From the sequence record OZ240615.1: a DNA stretch of 64,000 nt; one strand, 5' to 3'. Both the position numbers and the translations under genes were made by a program. Every line of letters starts with the position of its first letter. Position 1 is the stretch's first letter. The notes below the pieces were generated by a model, which made no database searches, was not told where the DNA came from, and saw only the letters and a program-made list of their open reading frames with translations. Of the stretch, positions 55,845-60,600 are shown in pieces.

Positions 55845-55884
55845 TGGTGGGTCCAGCAGGTTTTGAACCTGCGACCTATAGCTT
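55845..55884 (-). pseudogene. Orphan tRNA 3' half (starts at the anticodon loop)
   Basis: AA-GCTAT-AGGTC-GCAGG TTCAAAA CCTGC-TGGACCC-A-CCA; no matching 5' half found nearby. Confidence 0.75.
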
Positions 55885-56337
55885 AGGTTTTATGTTTCCT
55901 TTTTGGCAACCTTTACGGTATTCTTCTAAATTAAAAACACCATTTACTGAGTATTTTACAATAGTAGCAAAAGGCAGTCCGGTAAAAAGAGATGCATCCC
56001 GAATACTATCATAAACCCACCCATCGATGGTCCATGTCATTCTTAATTTATCTGACCCATCACGGTGTGCATCTTTACTATCGTAATAATTATTGAGGTG
56101 AGTCCCTTTTTCGACGTGGTCGGGATTACAACACCTACGATTGTTGCATTTATGTCTAACGAGCATATCTTCTGGAATTTCCCCTTTAGACATTGCATAG
56201 GCTAGTCTATGGACATTCCATTTTACTTTATTAATATTTATCTGCCCGTAACCTTGACTTGTAGATTTTGTCCAGTTCCAACAACCCGTTTCTTTATCGA
56301 TATCAATTTTGTCTTTTACAATATCGTAAAAGTTCAT
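55876..56337 (-). CDS. Free-standing HNH homing endonuclease
   Basis: CWNW...HRLAY...VRHKCNNRRCCNPDHVEKGTHLNN (HNH) plus C-terminal NUMOD1-like DNA-binding segment (YDSIRDASLFTGL). Confidence 0.88.
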   Translation of the reverse strand: MNFYDIVKDKIDIDKETGCWNWTKSTSQGYGQININKVKWNVHRLAYAMSKGEIPEDMLVRHKCNNRRCCNPDHVEKGTHLNNYYDSKDAHRDGSDKLRMTWTIDGWVYDSIRDASLFTGLPFATIVKYSVNGVFNLEEYRKGCQKGNIKPKL

Positions 56338-56655: not shown

Positions 56656-57513
56656 TTATTTCCCTGACGCTGTACCCTGAATACGCGCAGAGTTCTTCAG
56701 AAGAATTGTAGAGGCGTCTTCCAGTAACTGATCGCTATCGCCGGAGGTGTTTGCTACCACCAGGGTTTTAGTGCAAGGTACTTTTACTGTCGAGTTAAAG
56801 ATAATACCCGAGTCAGTAGTTGCCTTTTCGATCGTGTATACCGCTTTACCGTTTGGCAGTTTTGCATCGGCGTTCCAGGAATTGAAATCAATGATTTCCA
56901 GTCCGGAGTCTTTTTGCATAACAGCATCAAGGAACTTATTGTTTCGATCAGGCGCTGAGACCCAGAGGAATGCATCGTACTCGCCGGTATTCACTTTAGC
57001 CAAGGACCGGATACCGCCCTTAGCGTAGGTTTCAACTTTCGCGTAGTTCTTTTCCAGAGTTTGGAGATACTGCCATGAGGCATAAGATCCGGAGGTGGGT
57101 TCGCCAACCGCTATCTTGGTCCCTTCCTTCAGGTCACCTTTGCTTGTGACCTTACCGTCTTTCTTGACGGCAACGAAAACGCACTCGGAAGCCAGTTCGC
57201 CGATGATGTCAACGTTCTGTGCTTCATTAGCATGGCGTGAACGCCAGAACTGATACGCGTCAGCTTGAGTAAAACCGATAGTTGCTTCACCGGCGGCGAC
57301 ACGATCCAGATTATCGAGTGATCCTTTAGAAGGGAGCACAGTGGTCTGATAGCCGTATTCGCCGAGAGCGCTGGCTAAGTTAACACCGTATGTGGCGTTA
57401 TACGTCAGACCTTGTTGACCGGTCGTGATAACAACTTTGTCAGGTGCCGCAGAGGCACCAACGGAAAGGCAAAGCAACGCTACCGAAAACACGGCAAAAG
57501 CAAGTTTCTTCAT
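56656..57513 (-). CDS. TAXI-family TRAP solute-binding (periplasmic) protein
   Basis: Signal peptide; ITTGQQGLTY, SKGSLDNLDRV...IGFTQAD and IAVGEPTSGS motifs typical of TAXI receptors. Confidence 0.8.
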   Translation of the reverse strand: MKKLAFAVFSVALLCLSVGASAAPDKVVITTGQQGLTYNATYGVNLASALGEYGYQTTVLPSKGSLDNLDRVAAGEATIGFTQADAYQFWRSRHANEAQNVDIIGELASECVFVAVKKDGKVTSKGDLKEGTKIAVGEPTSGSYASWQYLQTLEKNYAKVETYAKGGIRSLAKVNTGEYDAFLWVSAPDRNNKFLDAVMQKDSGLEIIDFNSWNADAKLPNGKAVYTIEKATTDSGIIFNSTVKVPCTKTLVVANTSGDSDQLLEDASTILLKNSARIQGTASGK

Positions 57514-57539
57514 TTGTCAATTTCCTTGAAGGGTGTCAA

Positions 57540-58020
57540 TGCGGTTTACCCGCTAAGAGATTTGAGCGGATGACGAGTTGGCCCAACATTTGTATCAACC
57601 TGCGTCTACTAAAAAGGGCTTGCCTTTGTTTCGTGCTACCTGTAAGGGTTTAAGGTTAAGTTTGTTGCAAGTCATCCGCTCAAAAGGGTGATGCTTTCTG
57701 TAAGTTTCAGCTCATTCCATTCTTTGGTTTCCGGGCCACAGTAGGATTAAAGGTGAAAGGTCTGCTGGAACAGATTTTCTTACAGAAAGACATCGATAAT
57801 AAAAAAACAGGCTTCGAGAAAAAGAGAGTTAGCTATGGGAGTTTAACTACATCGAAGCCTGGTTGGAAAATGTGTCGTTGTCTCCCCGATGAGGGGAGAA
57901 CCGTAAAGCAAATGTTCTTATCTTTCCAGCCAGCCCGCTATCGAGATAATCCGAATATGAACAATCGCTTTTTGACGTTATTTCGTAACGACGAGAGTTT
58001 ACTACCGTGAAAGGAACCTT
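57540..58020. ncRNA. Candidate about 480-nt multi-domain structured RNA or long 5' leader of the TAXI gene
   Basis: Perfect long-range inverted repeats of 14, 10, 10 and 7 bp in tandem; no convincing ORF. Confidence 0.55.
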
Positions 58021-58024
58021 TGGT

Positions 58025-58195
58025 TCATAACTCTGATGACTGAGTAAATTTTAACCAAAGTGGTAAAGGTACTTTCTGGAATTCCGTTCCTTGGCACTCA
58101 TTGCAGACTAACGGCTCTTCTTTGATTTTCCAGCGCTCAAGTTGTTTCTTCGTGGCTGGGGTTAAACAATTTACGCATTGCATTTCCACTGCCAT
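58025..58195 (-). CDS. Small zinc-ribbon protein
   Basis: CVNC and CNEC motifs; start MAVEMQ with GAAGG RBS. Confidence 0.65.
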   Translation of the reverse strand: MAVEMQCVNCLTPATKKQLERWKIKEEPLVCNECQGTEFQKVPLPLWLKFTQSSEL

Positions 58196-58206
58196 AAATT
58201 TGCCTT

Positions 58207-59094
58207 CTAGATAAAAGACCAATCTTCCCATTCGGGACGTTTAGAGTAACAACGAGCATAAACTTCCTTTGGTTGAATATTCTCTCCCTGAGAACACTTA
58301 AAAGCATTAGCATATTCGTTCTTACCAGCTTTTACTCGGCGACGGTAATTTGGGTTGTTTTTACTTTGTGAATTATTCGCCTGGCGAGATTCATTGTATT
58401 TATCCTTCCAATGACTTTTAACTTTCCGGTCCGGGCCATAGTCATCAGAACGTTCTTCAATCACAACAGGAAACCCTTGTCGCGTCTCTTTCCACCAGAC
58501 AGAGAATCCCTTCGAGACATCCCAATTTTGATTTGGGTAATGACAAGACAGAAAACGGGACGCTAATCTTTTAATGGGTGTAAGATCAAAAGCAGTTTGT
58601 AACACCTTGCTGGAATGTATTCCCATCCGTAAAAATTCTTCCGTTTGTACTACAGCATGTCTCGGCATACGAGACACTTCGCTGTAATAAACATTAGAGT
58701 CTTTAGGATGGAAAATGACGACGCCTTCAATCGTTTTGTCCTTTACATCCGGAATTTTAATTAAACCAATATCATTCCAGTTAGGGAAATGTTTACCTTG
58801 ACGATTGGCGAAGTGGAGCCATAATTCATTTTCTTTCCACTCCGCTTTTTGTAAATTAAAGCCTAAGGTTACTTTCGTCAGCTGCTCTTTAAATGTATCA
58901 AGAAAAGCCTGATAAAGTTCAAAGAACTCCGTGGTCAGTTTCACTTCGTTACGCGAAACAAACTGTTGTGCGGACCATTCAAGTAAGCAACGACCAAGAA
59001 TTTCCCAGTCTTTATTTTCATCAGAGAAAGCAGATATCATTTTACGGAGCCTCTGGCTCAACGTCAAAATGATAATCGTAGTTGAGTCAGTCAT
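58207..59094 (-). CDS. Hypothetical protein
   Basis: 295 aa, GAGG RBS. Confidence 0.7.
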   Translation of the reverse strand: MTDSTTIIILTLSQRLRKMISAFSDENKDWEILGRCLLEWSAQQFVSRNEVKLTTEFFELYQAFLDTFKEQLTKVTLGFNLQKAEWKENELWLHFANRQGKHFPNWNDIGLIKIPDVKDKTIEGVVIFHPKDSNVYYSEVSRMPRHAVVQTEEFLRMGIHSSKVLQTAFDLTPIKRLASRFLSCHYPNQNWDVSKGFSVWWKETRQGFPVVIEERSDDYGPDRKVKSHWKDKYNESRQANNSQSKNNPNYRRRVKAGKNEYANAFKCSQGENIQPKEVYARCYSKRPEWEDWSFI

Positions 59095-59145
59095 ATTGCC
59101 CTCGTTTTACAGTCTTCTACACTAAAAGACTGTACCGTAAAAAAG

Positions 59146-59179
59146 CATAATAGAGAGAAGGGTTTAAACCCTTCTCTCT
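59146..59179 (-). terminator. Terminator after the permuted tRNA-like RNAs
   Basis: AGAGAGAAGGGTT/AACCCTTCTCTCT at 59152-59179; TATG at 59149-59146. Confidence 0.75.
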
Positions 59180-59231
59180 CGAGTTTGTTTGTCAAAAAGC
59201 GGTCTCTTTGAGAAAGAAACTTTTAGGGAAG

Positions 59232-59460
59232 AAGGGCGACGGATAAGGATATAACCATCCTCACCGCCACCCATAGCCATTCAGCTATAAACAGAATCCA
59301 GCGCGACCTATTTCACAATAAGATTGGGTTTAGGTTTATAATCTAGTGCTCTACCAGCTGAGCTATCTGCCTCCAAGAAACACTCTGTGAATGTGTCCAG
59401 GTAGGCAGAGCGGAATTCGAATCCGCGACCTCTAGAATTCTTTCCGTAAAAGAAAGAAAG
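59232..59460 (-). ncRNA. Circularly permuted tRNA-like RNA 2 (Y-RNA/YrlA-like topology)
   Basis: 3' half 59436-59402 precedes 5' half 59372-59342; acceptor AGGCAGA/TCTGCCT, anticodon-type stem CTAGA/TCTAG, perfect D and T arms; 29-nt linker. Confidence 0.8.
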
Positions 59461-59461
59461 T

Positions 59462-59691
59462 TCAGTCCGCTATTTTACTGTCTACTCTTTATCTTTAAGC
59501 GTGTGAGGCGATAAGATAAAGTTAACACTAACCATCCGAGTAGCATTATGGGTGCATTGATGACTGCGTCTACCAATTCCGCCATTCTCCCATAGTTTGG
59601 TGGGAGAAGAAAGATTCGAACTTCCAGTGAGGTCATCACACCTGCTATACGGACTAACAATAAAGATAAAGTTGGCCTCAATCTTTATTAT
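59462..59691 (-). ncRNA. Circularly permuted tRNA-like RNA 1 (Leu-type D arm; Y-RNA/YrlA-like topology)
   Basis: 3' half 59636-59598 (ends A-CCA) precedes 5' half 59591-59560; acceptor GGGAGAA/TTCTCCC; stem GTCATCA/TGATGAC; 6-nt linker. Confidence 0.85.
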
Positions 59692-59727: not shown

Positions 59728-60495
59728 TTAAGCAGTGAAGTTTTTCAGGATCACGTTGGCCAGTACTTCGCCGATGGAACCCTGAACGACTTCGGTGCAG
59801 TTTGCGCGCATACGGGCATTAGTGACTTCAACGATCAGTTCGTCGATATCACGCAGCGCGTTGGCTTTCTGCATCGGTGTACACGCGCCAGAATAACTTT
59901 TACGCGTGAAGCTGCCGATCACCACGGTCGTTTCTGACTCTTTTACTTGCGCCGGATGACGCTCGGTAGCCGGGGCCAGAATGATCGGGGTGAAGACTTT
60001 TTCGGTTTTCGTTGTGACTTCATCGGTCACAGTACGGAAGCCGTAAGTACTGTTAGCGTCGCGTTCCCACTGTTTGGAGGAATCCAGCGTAGGAGCAGAC
60101 GCGATCAGTTTGCGCAGTTCGGCCAGACGTTTCTCCAGACCGAGGAGTTCATCTACCGGCACCGCTGGAACGAGGACTTCGCCTTTGAACATGATATCTG
60201 CTTTCGCTACCTGATTGGTCAGGGCTTTTTGCAGGCGCAGGTCTTCCGCGGTGGCGAAGTAATAGAACAGGTACTGCAGCGTTTCGGCGACGGTAGTGAT
60301 CACCGGCTTGCTGGTACTTTCGCTTTTTTCGATCGCTGCGTTGGCGTCGCTATCTTCGTGCAGTTTCAGCGTTTTATCAAATCCGCTGAAGTATTCAGCC
60401 GATTTATTGAATTTTTTACTGGCGTCTTCGATCAGCACTTGCACTTGTTTAGTGCGAGTAGGTTCTGCTGCCAATACTTCGTGTAACTTAGCCAT
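59728..60495 (-). CDS. Conserved-type helical/coiled-coil protein of unknown function (MAKLHEVLAAE...)
   Basis: 255 aa, AAGGA RBS, capsid-like optimised codon usage; ends 36 nt before the permuted RNA 1 leader. Confidence 0.85.
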   Translation of the reverse strand: MAKLHEVLAAEPTRTKQVQVLIEDASKKFNKSAEYFSGFDKTLKLHEDSDANAAIEKSESTSKPVITTVAETLQYLFYYFATAEDLRLQKALTNQVAKADIMFKGEVLVPAVPVDELLGLEKRLAELRKLIASAPTLDSSKQWERDANSTYGFRTVTDEVTTKTEKVFTPIILAPATERHPAQVKESETTVVIGSFTRKSYSGACTPMQKANALRDIDELIVEVTNARMRANCTEVVQGSIGEVLANVILKNFTA

Positions 60496-60600
60496 TTAAT
60501 TTCCTTACGATAAGAGTGAGAATAACGTCTGTTCATAGACTAGTTATCACCGTAAAAAAATAAAAAAAAAGAAAGGGGATAATACCCCTTTCTACGTTAC

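Follow-up and report, generated by a model that had tools for sequence, protein, structure and literature searches.

Stable RNAs other than tRNAs have a precedent in the tRNA gene cluster of phage T4, which includes RNAs C and D (species 1 and 2), about 140 nucleotides (nt) long and released by the processing of tRNA precursors. The GOLLD (RF01998) and ROOL (RF03087) RNAs are large, often lie beside phage tRNA genes, and combine many helices with strongly conserved loops, and riboswitches and protein-binding leaders that mask the Shine-Dalgarno (SD) sequence are long, conserved, structured 5′ leaders with their most conserved bases in internal loops. In nucleus-forming giant phages, small RNAs of 201phi2-1 and phiKZ are known from ONT-cappable-seq, and premature termination in 5′ untranslated regions was the commonest source of the small RNAs mapped in 201phi2-1, besides intergenic ones (PMC11512511). 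Here, we analyzed a 511-nt non-coding gap (positions 57514-58024) within a 64,000-nt stretch of sequence record OZ240615.1, the whole of which is called the window in the following and which comes from a Klebsiella jumbo phage of the vB_KpM_Centimanus/FBKp24 type (genus Maaswegvirus). The gap holds two adjacent candidate structured RNA modules that would be read on the minus strand and are split by an intrinsic terminator, namely the 229-nt module A, which extends from a TATG motif at ~58026 to the terminator at 57798, and the 284-nt module B (57797 to 57514), which lies directly ahead of the gene of a TAXI-type solute-binding protein. We consider it probable that both are functional structured RNAs of this strand.

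In comparison to the small RNAs of 201phi2-1 and phiKZ, the locus shares the nucleus-forming kind of host phage with its own RNA polymerases, a promoter-like motif with an intrinsic terminator within 250 nt, the position upstream of a protein gene, and the conservation among related giant phages. However, no sequence similarity to these RNAs was detected, the present RNAs are predicted from sequence, and compared with typical examples, module A has a greater length and a more elaborate structure, with another structured leader coming after it. RNAs C and D of T4 are comparable as stable non-tRNA RNAs within a phage tRNA region but differ in their length of about 140 nt and in being processed from a tRNA precursor. 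The candidate RNA families described here are new, whereas their kinds, a phage small RNA and a cis-regulatory leader, are known. The assignment of the source phage to the phiKZ-like, nucleus-forming phages is based on an RNA polymerase beta-like domain encoded in its genome and on the tubulin and nucleus-shell genes that are reported in the FBKp24 genome paper.

Within positions 57400-58300, the window matches vB_KpM_Centimanus (OZ240615) at 100% and vB_KpM_FBKp24 (Maaswegvirus) at 99.4% identity, and ten more isolates, Siatvirus KpLz-2_45 and its kin, have about 68% identity to this interval. A further lineage, X11, was found in a public run and is 93.5% identical to the window. Together, the public runs X10 and X11 point to at least two further lineages of the phage group with about 93.5% and 95-99% identity to the window, neither of which is among the 13 matching phage records. 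The gap is flanked on both sides by minus-strand genes and is the longest stretch of the window that contains neither a gene nor a tRNA, as judged by a crude gene call based on open reading frames (ORFs).

The first-pass annotation had listed four inverted repeats in this region, and all of them are present, each within one base of where it had been placed. The repeat search recovered a perfect repeat of 14 nt (57561-57574/57671-57684), a perfect repeat of 11 nt that had been given as 10 nt (57694-57704/57779-57789), and a repeat of 13 nt with one mismatch (57805-57817/57852-57864), the core of which (57808-17/57852-61) is perfect; the fourth, TCTCCCC/GGGGAGA (57881-87/57893-99), was read directly from the sequence. 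With a minimum length of 10 nt and a loop of at most 150 nt, three perfect inverted repeats are found in 57514-58024, as compared to a mean of 0.08 in shuffled sequences, and none of 1000 dinucleotide shuffles reached three. Folding of the window sequence on the minus strand gave z-scores of -3.35 for module A (58026-57798) and -3.55 for module B (57797-57514), and the z-score of the whole gap was -3.5 on the minus strand versus -2.1 on the plus strand. When folded separately, the sequences of the window and of Siatvirus adopted the same architecture.

The orientation of the RNA on the minus strand follows from both flanking genes, from the terminator, and from the wobble pairs, and the TAXI gene (56656-57513, minus strand) therefore lies downstream of the structured stretch, as had been proposed. 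In Siatvirus, G-U pairs occur on the minus strand in helix P4, twice in P5, in P6, and in the inner P6 hairpin (hairpin b). These pairs, as well as the X11 changes at 57903 and 57970 in P2, would be A-C mismatches if read on the plus strand. In agreement with this, the minus strand scored 138.5 bits with a covariance model of the P6 domain, as compared to 24 bits for the plus strand.

The core of module A (57872-58026, minus strand) begins with the hairpin H0 (58022-26/58014-18) directly after the TATG, continues with a conserved unpaired stretch of about 20 nt (~57993-58013), and closes with the six-pair helix P1 (57987-92/57874-79), which encloses P2-P3 (57902-57977), a long arm whose apical loop is GC-rich and invariant, as well as the hairpin P4 (57893-99/57881-87), which corresponds to the TCTCCCC/GGGGAGA repeat. 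The sequence of P2 was replaced wholesale between the lineages while its complementarity was kept. The P2 duplex energies of -14.5 and -15.4 kcal/mol in the two lineages compare with -4.4 ± 2.0 kcal/mol in shuffled sequences and were better than the shuffles in 2999 of 3000 and 3000 of 3000 trials, respectively. In X11, four changes in P2 keep or improve pairing (57903, GC to GU; 57970, AU to GU; 57912, UU to UA; and the deletion at 57958, CG to UG). P4 differs between the window and Siatvirus by one compensatory and one wobble change.

Module A ends with an intrinsic terminator (57798-57871, minus strand), in which a GC-rich stem of 10 base pairs (bp) (57852-61/57808-17) stands directly before a U7 tract (57801-57807) on the transcribed strand, as is typical of Rho-independent termination, and a U-run follows the stem on the minus strand only. 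A simple terminator scan had missed it because its loop exceeds 8 nt. Siatvirus has a terminator at the same place, likewise with a U-run after the stem, but the stem sequence is different and includes two compensatory pairs. The loop (57826-57847) contains a palindromic UAGCUA that is conserved in both genera. In Siatvirus, a 9-nt loop leaves this hexamer exposed, whereas in the window it pairs in cis; that it could mediate loop-loop dimerization is pure speculation.

The terminator also bears on the main idea of the first-pass annotation, which proposed a large non-coding RNA and pointed to GOLLD. In this reading, the gap would be a single particle of about 510 nt in the manner of GOLLD or ROOL. 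The region is indeed long and ornate and lies beside a tRNA cluster, the two genera that conserve one half also conserve the other, and the conserved UAGCUA palindrome of the terminator loop would fit such a particle. On the other hand, a canonical terminator with its U-tract stands in the middle of the region and is kept by compensatory change, and no consistent long-range pairing between the two halves was predicted. Searches with 4227 Rfam models up to an expect value (E) of 10 gave only chance-level matches for the gap in the window and in Siatvirus (E of at least 3.8, to eukaryotic small nuclear and small nucleolar RNA models and one Bacteroides small RNA), and neither GOLLD nor ROOL was among them. 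An Rfam search of the whole window at gathering scores found only tRNAs. Compared with GOLLD and ROOL, the locus thus differs in the missing covariance-model match and in its division by the terminator into ~229 and ~284 nt, and also in belonging to a Gammaproteobacteria phage and in its very narrow distribution. A single large RNA is therefore an improbable explanation, as the terminator cuts the region in two. The same searches matched no known riboswitch class and none of the other described families, including T-box elements, ribozymes, introns, 6S RNA, tmRNA, Y RNA, and RNase P.

Module B consists of two domains with long stems and a 3′ tail. The P5 domain (57690-57794, minus strand) is a three-way junction closed by a 15-bp stem (57779-57794/57690-57704) and contains a variable hairpin (~57761-57775) and a conserved arm (~57705-57758). 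After a register shift of 1 nt that accounts for a bulged U of the window, the inner 11 bp of the P5 stem show five double changes between the window and Siatvirus, two changes to G-U, and no broken pair, and the duplex was matched in 0 of 3000 and 8 of 3000 shuffles. In the P6 domain (57561-57684), a 14-bp stem (57671-84/57561-74) is followed by short helices around large invariant internal loops. Across the 36 modeled pairs of this domain, 97% of the cells are paired, versus 28-56% when the partners are slid against each other. Three double changes (two in P6 and one in P6d) and two one-sided changes to or from G-U were found, and the domain is 82% identical between the lineages. The first-pass annotation had also drawn a local GTTGG/CCAAC hairpin within this domain, but as written its loop would be too small to form. 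The bases involved more likely pair over a long range inside the domain of the 14-bp helix, although both columns are invariant and do not decide between the two pairings.

Compensatory changes of this kind argue against an explanation at the DNA level, in which the conservation would be due to promoters, to palindromic operators, or to a site of replication or packaging. The invariant blocks could in principle be protein-binding sites, and AAACTTAAC (~57655-57663) resembles by eye the middle-promoter word AAanTTACc of phiKZ (PMC4666361). However, helix arms that are about 75-100 nt apart change in a compensatory way, the G-U pairs are strand-specific, and a T-run follows the terminator stem on one strand only. 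A part of module A also recurs upstream of another gene, as GUAGUAAACUCUCGUCGUU, which comprises the module A linker and the 5′ arm of P1, has an exact same-sense copy of 19 nt (E = 0.003 within the genome) at OZ240615 196727-196745 (minus strand; locus L041, 1501-1519), where a signal-peptide gene begins about 35-55 nt further downstream. As a shared regulatory word, this copy was discarded, since MJ359 has not kept it and no more than six copies of its core 9-mer are present in 300 kb. DNA-level signals are as improbable an explanation as the single large RNA.

The conservation of the gap is far above the neutral rate. Fourfold-degenerate sites of the TAXI gene have 54% identity between the window and Siatvirus, and those of the gene for a 295-amino-acid protein upstream have 34%, whereas about 71% of the positions of the module A core are invariant and the identity of the P6 domain exceeds both neutral values. 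A run of 33 nt within the P6 domain (57622-57654) is identical in every record, in a stretch of 64 columns the window differs from Siatvirus at only four, including two that together make up a compensated pair, and further invariant blocks are found in both halves of the gap. X11 shows the same. It has 24 substitutions (4.7%) and one indel in the 511 non-coding nt, as compared to at least 16 substitutions (at least 9.4%) in the 171 nt of the adjacent gene, a mini-gene for a zinc-ribbon protein of 56 amino acids with a CxxC...CxxC pattern (58025-58195, minus strand) that is annotated in all relatives. The gap thus evolves more slowly than this gene. The X11 substitutions in the mini-gene (58064-58111) are mostly three bases apart, the pattern expected of third codon positions, and the mini-gene is therefore real. 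The gap substitutions do not show such a periodicity. No X11 change falls into the arms of P5 or P6 or into 57622-57748, seven changes cluster in the variable hairpin and the junction of the P5 domain, and those of the P6 domain (57602, 57619, and 57621) are all in unpaired columns. With the exception of three broken pairs that are discussed below, the other changes lie in loops or preserve pairing. Compensatory base-pair changes across the relatives and conservation above the neutral rate coincide in the gap, and the view of a conserved, structured, non-coding region is supported.

The description of the region as free of ORFs has to be corrected in one point. An ORF of 85 codons exists on the plus strand (57753-58010) and is listed as a hypothetical protein in both Maaswegvirus GenBank records (CENTIMANUS_00115 and FBKp24_044), and a minus-sense ORF of 58 codons runs through the TATG in Siatvirus, so that a plus-strand protein or a small minus-strand peptide had to be considered. 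The plus-strand ORF is neither annotated nor open in the Siatvirus records, a 2-nt deletion at 57958 disrupts its frame in X11 and X10, and it has no Pfam match. We conclude that it is not a gene, because it is absent from the Siatvirus annotations and frameshifted in the 93.5% identical relative X11. The window frame that corresponds to the Siatvirus ORF stops after eight codons. No open frame is common to the relatives across the gap, and together with the missing three-base periodicity of the substitutions, this makes a coding function the least credible of all explanations considered here.

The 3′ tail of module B (57514-57560, minus strand) connects the P6 domain to the TAXI start codon (57511-57513). 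It contains the hairpin P7 (57550-53/57541-44), which is kept in both lineages and has the X11 change at 57547 in its loop, and the SD sequence AAGGA (57523-57527). Just 5′ of P6, a CCCUU (57685-57689) is a candidate anti-SD sequence that can pair with the AAGG(A/G) of the TAXI ribosome-binding site. Minimum-energy folding predicted the CCCUU:AAGG pairing separately for the window and for Siatvirus, and the consensus fold contains it as well, but as both sides are invariant, it does not show covariation. The predicted pairing in both lineages suggests that the leader masks translation initiation of TAXI until the P6 loops are bound. The earlier proposal of a leader for TAXI is plausible by position for the promoter-distal half only.

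Based on these data, we infer the following course of events. Transcription by a phage RNA polymerase would start at the G of the TATG at 58026, and most transcripts would stop at the terminator at ~57798, which would yield a small RNA of ~229 nt. Transcripts that read through would carry the 284-nt leader of module B into TAXI, where the pairing of CCCUU with the SD sequence would hold translation off. A factor binding to the conserved P6 loops, which may be a protein, an RNA, or a small molecule, could then remodel the leader and release TAXI translation. We see about an even chance that the locus works in this way, with a small RNA formed by termination and a read-through leader that masks the ribosome-binding site. 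It is more tentative, and in our view rather unlikely in full, that module B is a new ligand- or protein-sensing leader of a secreted TAXI protein and that the phage polymerase produces module A as a new small RNA, which would act in trans through invariant loops that bind a host or phage factor.

The proposed start is based on analogy to phiKZ, in which the late-promoter consensus is TATG and its last base (G) is the transcription start (PMC4666361). The TATG at 58026-58029, a candidate promoter of the phiKZ type for the non-virion RNA polymerase, overlaps the stop codon of the mini-gene in the window and is kept in the window lineage, in Siatvirus, and in X11, while the flanking bases 58030, 58036, and 58039 vary. 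Its promoter role can only be proposed because TATG is not statistically enriched in upstream regions. No repeated promoter word emerged from a k-mer search of the window. An arrangement of terminator, T-run, and TATGAAC or TATGC is conserved between the genera upstream of the genes that end at 60495 and 59094. In these intergenic regions (60496-60600 and 59095-59240, minus strand), the terminator hairpin is kept by compensatory change, and the TATGAAC or TATGC follows the T-run about 40-55 nt before the start codon. Both regions are likely to be promoters of the phage polymerase.

A single transcription unit with read-through is the simplest model, because the ~9 nt between the terminator and P5 contain neither a TATG nor any recurring word. 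The two modules may nevertheless be unrelated units, with A as a free-standing small RNA that has no link to TAXI and B either transcribed together with TAXI from its own promoter, which would be of an unrecognized class and located at the terminator or just behind it, or cut out of the tRNA-cluster transcript as a stable RNA of its own. This alternative is supported by the strength of the conserved terminator (10 GC-rich pairs and U7), by a neighborhood of tRNAs and tRNA-like RNAs that need processing, and by the existence of middle and early promoter classes in phiKZ-like phages (PMC4666361, PMC11512511). In addition, the minus-strand sequence of one short X10 contig stops at 57687, where a non-templated A-run is attached. 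This would be compatible with the 3′ end of a tailed RNA at the border of the P5 and P6 domains, although a single contig is only a hint. Besides the short spacer without a promoter-like motif, two units are disfavored by the fact that module B does not have a terminator of its own before the TAXI start codon, and we regard them as an unlikely, though not far-fetched, arrangement.

Several observations weigh against the interpretation of the gap as two functional RNA modules with the proposed course of transcription. The covariation is drawn from only two deep lineages, the window and Siatvirus, plus one or two shallow ones, and each covarying pair therefore rests on a single evolutionary event. 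P1, P3, H0, the anti-SD pairing, and most of the inner P6 helices are invariant and do not contribute any covariation, and the folding z-score of the Siatvirus module A is just -1.5. X11 breaks two terminal pairs on the minus strand (57899 and 57817) and one pair of the variable hairpin (57774). With respect to mechanism, TATG occurs 21 times in upstream regions versus 18.4 ± 4.1 times in shuffled sequences, inspection by eye did not reveal an antiterminator pairing for the terminator of module A, and no antisense target of the single-stranded stretch or the apical loop of module A was found in the phage genome with up to three mismatches. As to expression, none of the RNA runs on record contains the region. 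Wastewater runs labeled "RNA-Seq cDNA" do contain it as contigs, which are possibly DNA, and X10 and X11 likewise consist of contigs, the depth and strand of which are uninformative on expression.

Module B resembles the SD-masking leaders introduced above in being a long, conserved, structured 5′ leader with its most conserved bases in internal loops and a ribosome-binding site that is predicted to pair with an upstream pyrimidine stretch. It differs in that it matches no known aptamer class, in the lack of covariation in the anti-SD pairing, and in the fact that TAXI genes of other phages do not have the leader. The upstream regions of TAXI in Erwinia, Salmonella, Pseudaeromonas, and uncultured phages are short spacers or unrelated sequences, for which nhmmer detected no relation to the element, and as the TAXI genes of Erwinia, Pseudaeromonas, and uncultured phages occur without the element, it is not a general "TAXI riboswitch". 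With the P6 covariance model, copies were not detected in phiEaH2, Huxley, KLEP7, or Moabite, and the phage's own genome yielded no paralogue. Exact-motif scans of IMG/VR returned only the known phages, one extra Siatvirus-like contig, and chance matches, with loci L020-L022 lying in unrelated sequence and loci L015-L019 sharing just a 16-mer. JGI metagenomes contained nothing that matched the profile of the 295-amino-acid neighbor protein or a 20-mer, GTDB genomes contained neither of two motifs (the second of which fits the window lineage only), and E. coli genomes gave no blastn match to the element. By the searches run, the element appears to be confined to two phage genera.

In nucleus-forming jumbo phages, which have their own polymerases and export mRNA from a protein shell, regulation at the RNA level is almost unexplored. 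The locus described here provides two compact RNA elements, a candidate small RNA with defined ends and a leader with a possible gating role for a secreted solute-binding protein. Phages of this kind (Centimanus) are already part of Klebsiella therapy cocktails, and the analysis of the locus also corrects a spurious protein annotation in two GenBank records. If a sensing leader and a trans-acting small RNA were indeed present, structured regulatory RNAs would thereby be defined for the first time in Klebsiella chimalliviruses.

The TAXI gene itself encodes an NMT1_3-type solute-binding protein (Pfam NMT1_3, E = 1.5e-12) with a signal-like sequence at the N-terminus. The protein is 95% identical between the window and Siatvirus, as compared to only 66% for its neighbor protein between the two genera. 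The homologues in Erwinia jumbo phages are 65-70% identical and likewise lie within a tRNA gene cluster, and membrane partner subunits of TAXI were not seen nearby. In the direction of transcription, the tRNA gene cluster is located 3′ of TAXI, and a suppressor tRNA(UUA) and tRNA-like RNAs precede the gap. This suppressor-type tRNA (59400-59483, minus strand) reads UAA with its anticodon UUA, is shared by Centimanus, FBKp24, and Siatvirus (LPKP23), and is already noted in the FBKp24 genome paper.

Within the tRNA cluster, an HNH endonuclease gene (55876-56337, minus strand) lies between tRNA-Leu and tRNA-Met. It is absent from this place in FBKp24, LPKP23, and MJ359, while KpLz-2_45 carries an HNH gene one tRNA further along, and it looks like a mobile insertion. 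Such HNH genes that move in and out of the adjacent cluster could make one think of the gap as a decaying mobile element, that is, an intron or homing-endonuclease remnant with the repeats as relics. However, the element is kept at the same place in 14 of 14 records and is under purifying selection with covariation, no gene is interrupted, and no group I or group II intron was matched, so that we regard this origin as very improbable.

A final observation concerns the exchange of sequence between the two phage groups. The 501 bp of OZ240615 196476-196976 are 99.8% identical in Centimanus and in KpSz_1, KpZh_1, and KpZh_LPS_45, which carry the Siatvirus-type version of the gap, whereas KpLz_1_41 and MJ359 of the same group are 71% identical at this position. 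This points to recent recombination between the Maaswegvirus and Siatvirus-type groups.

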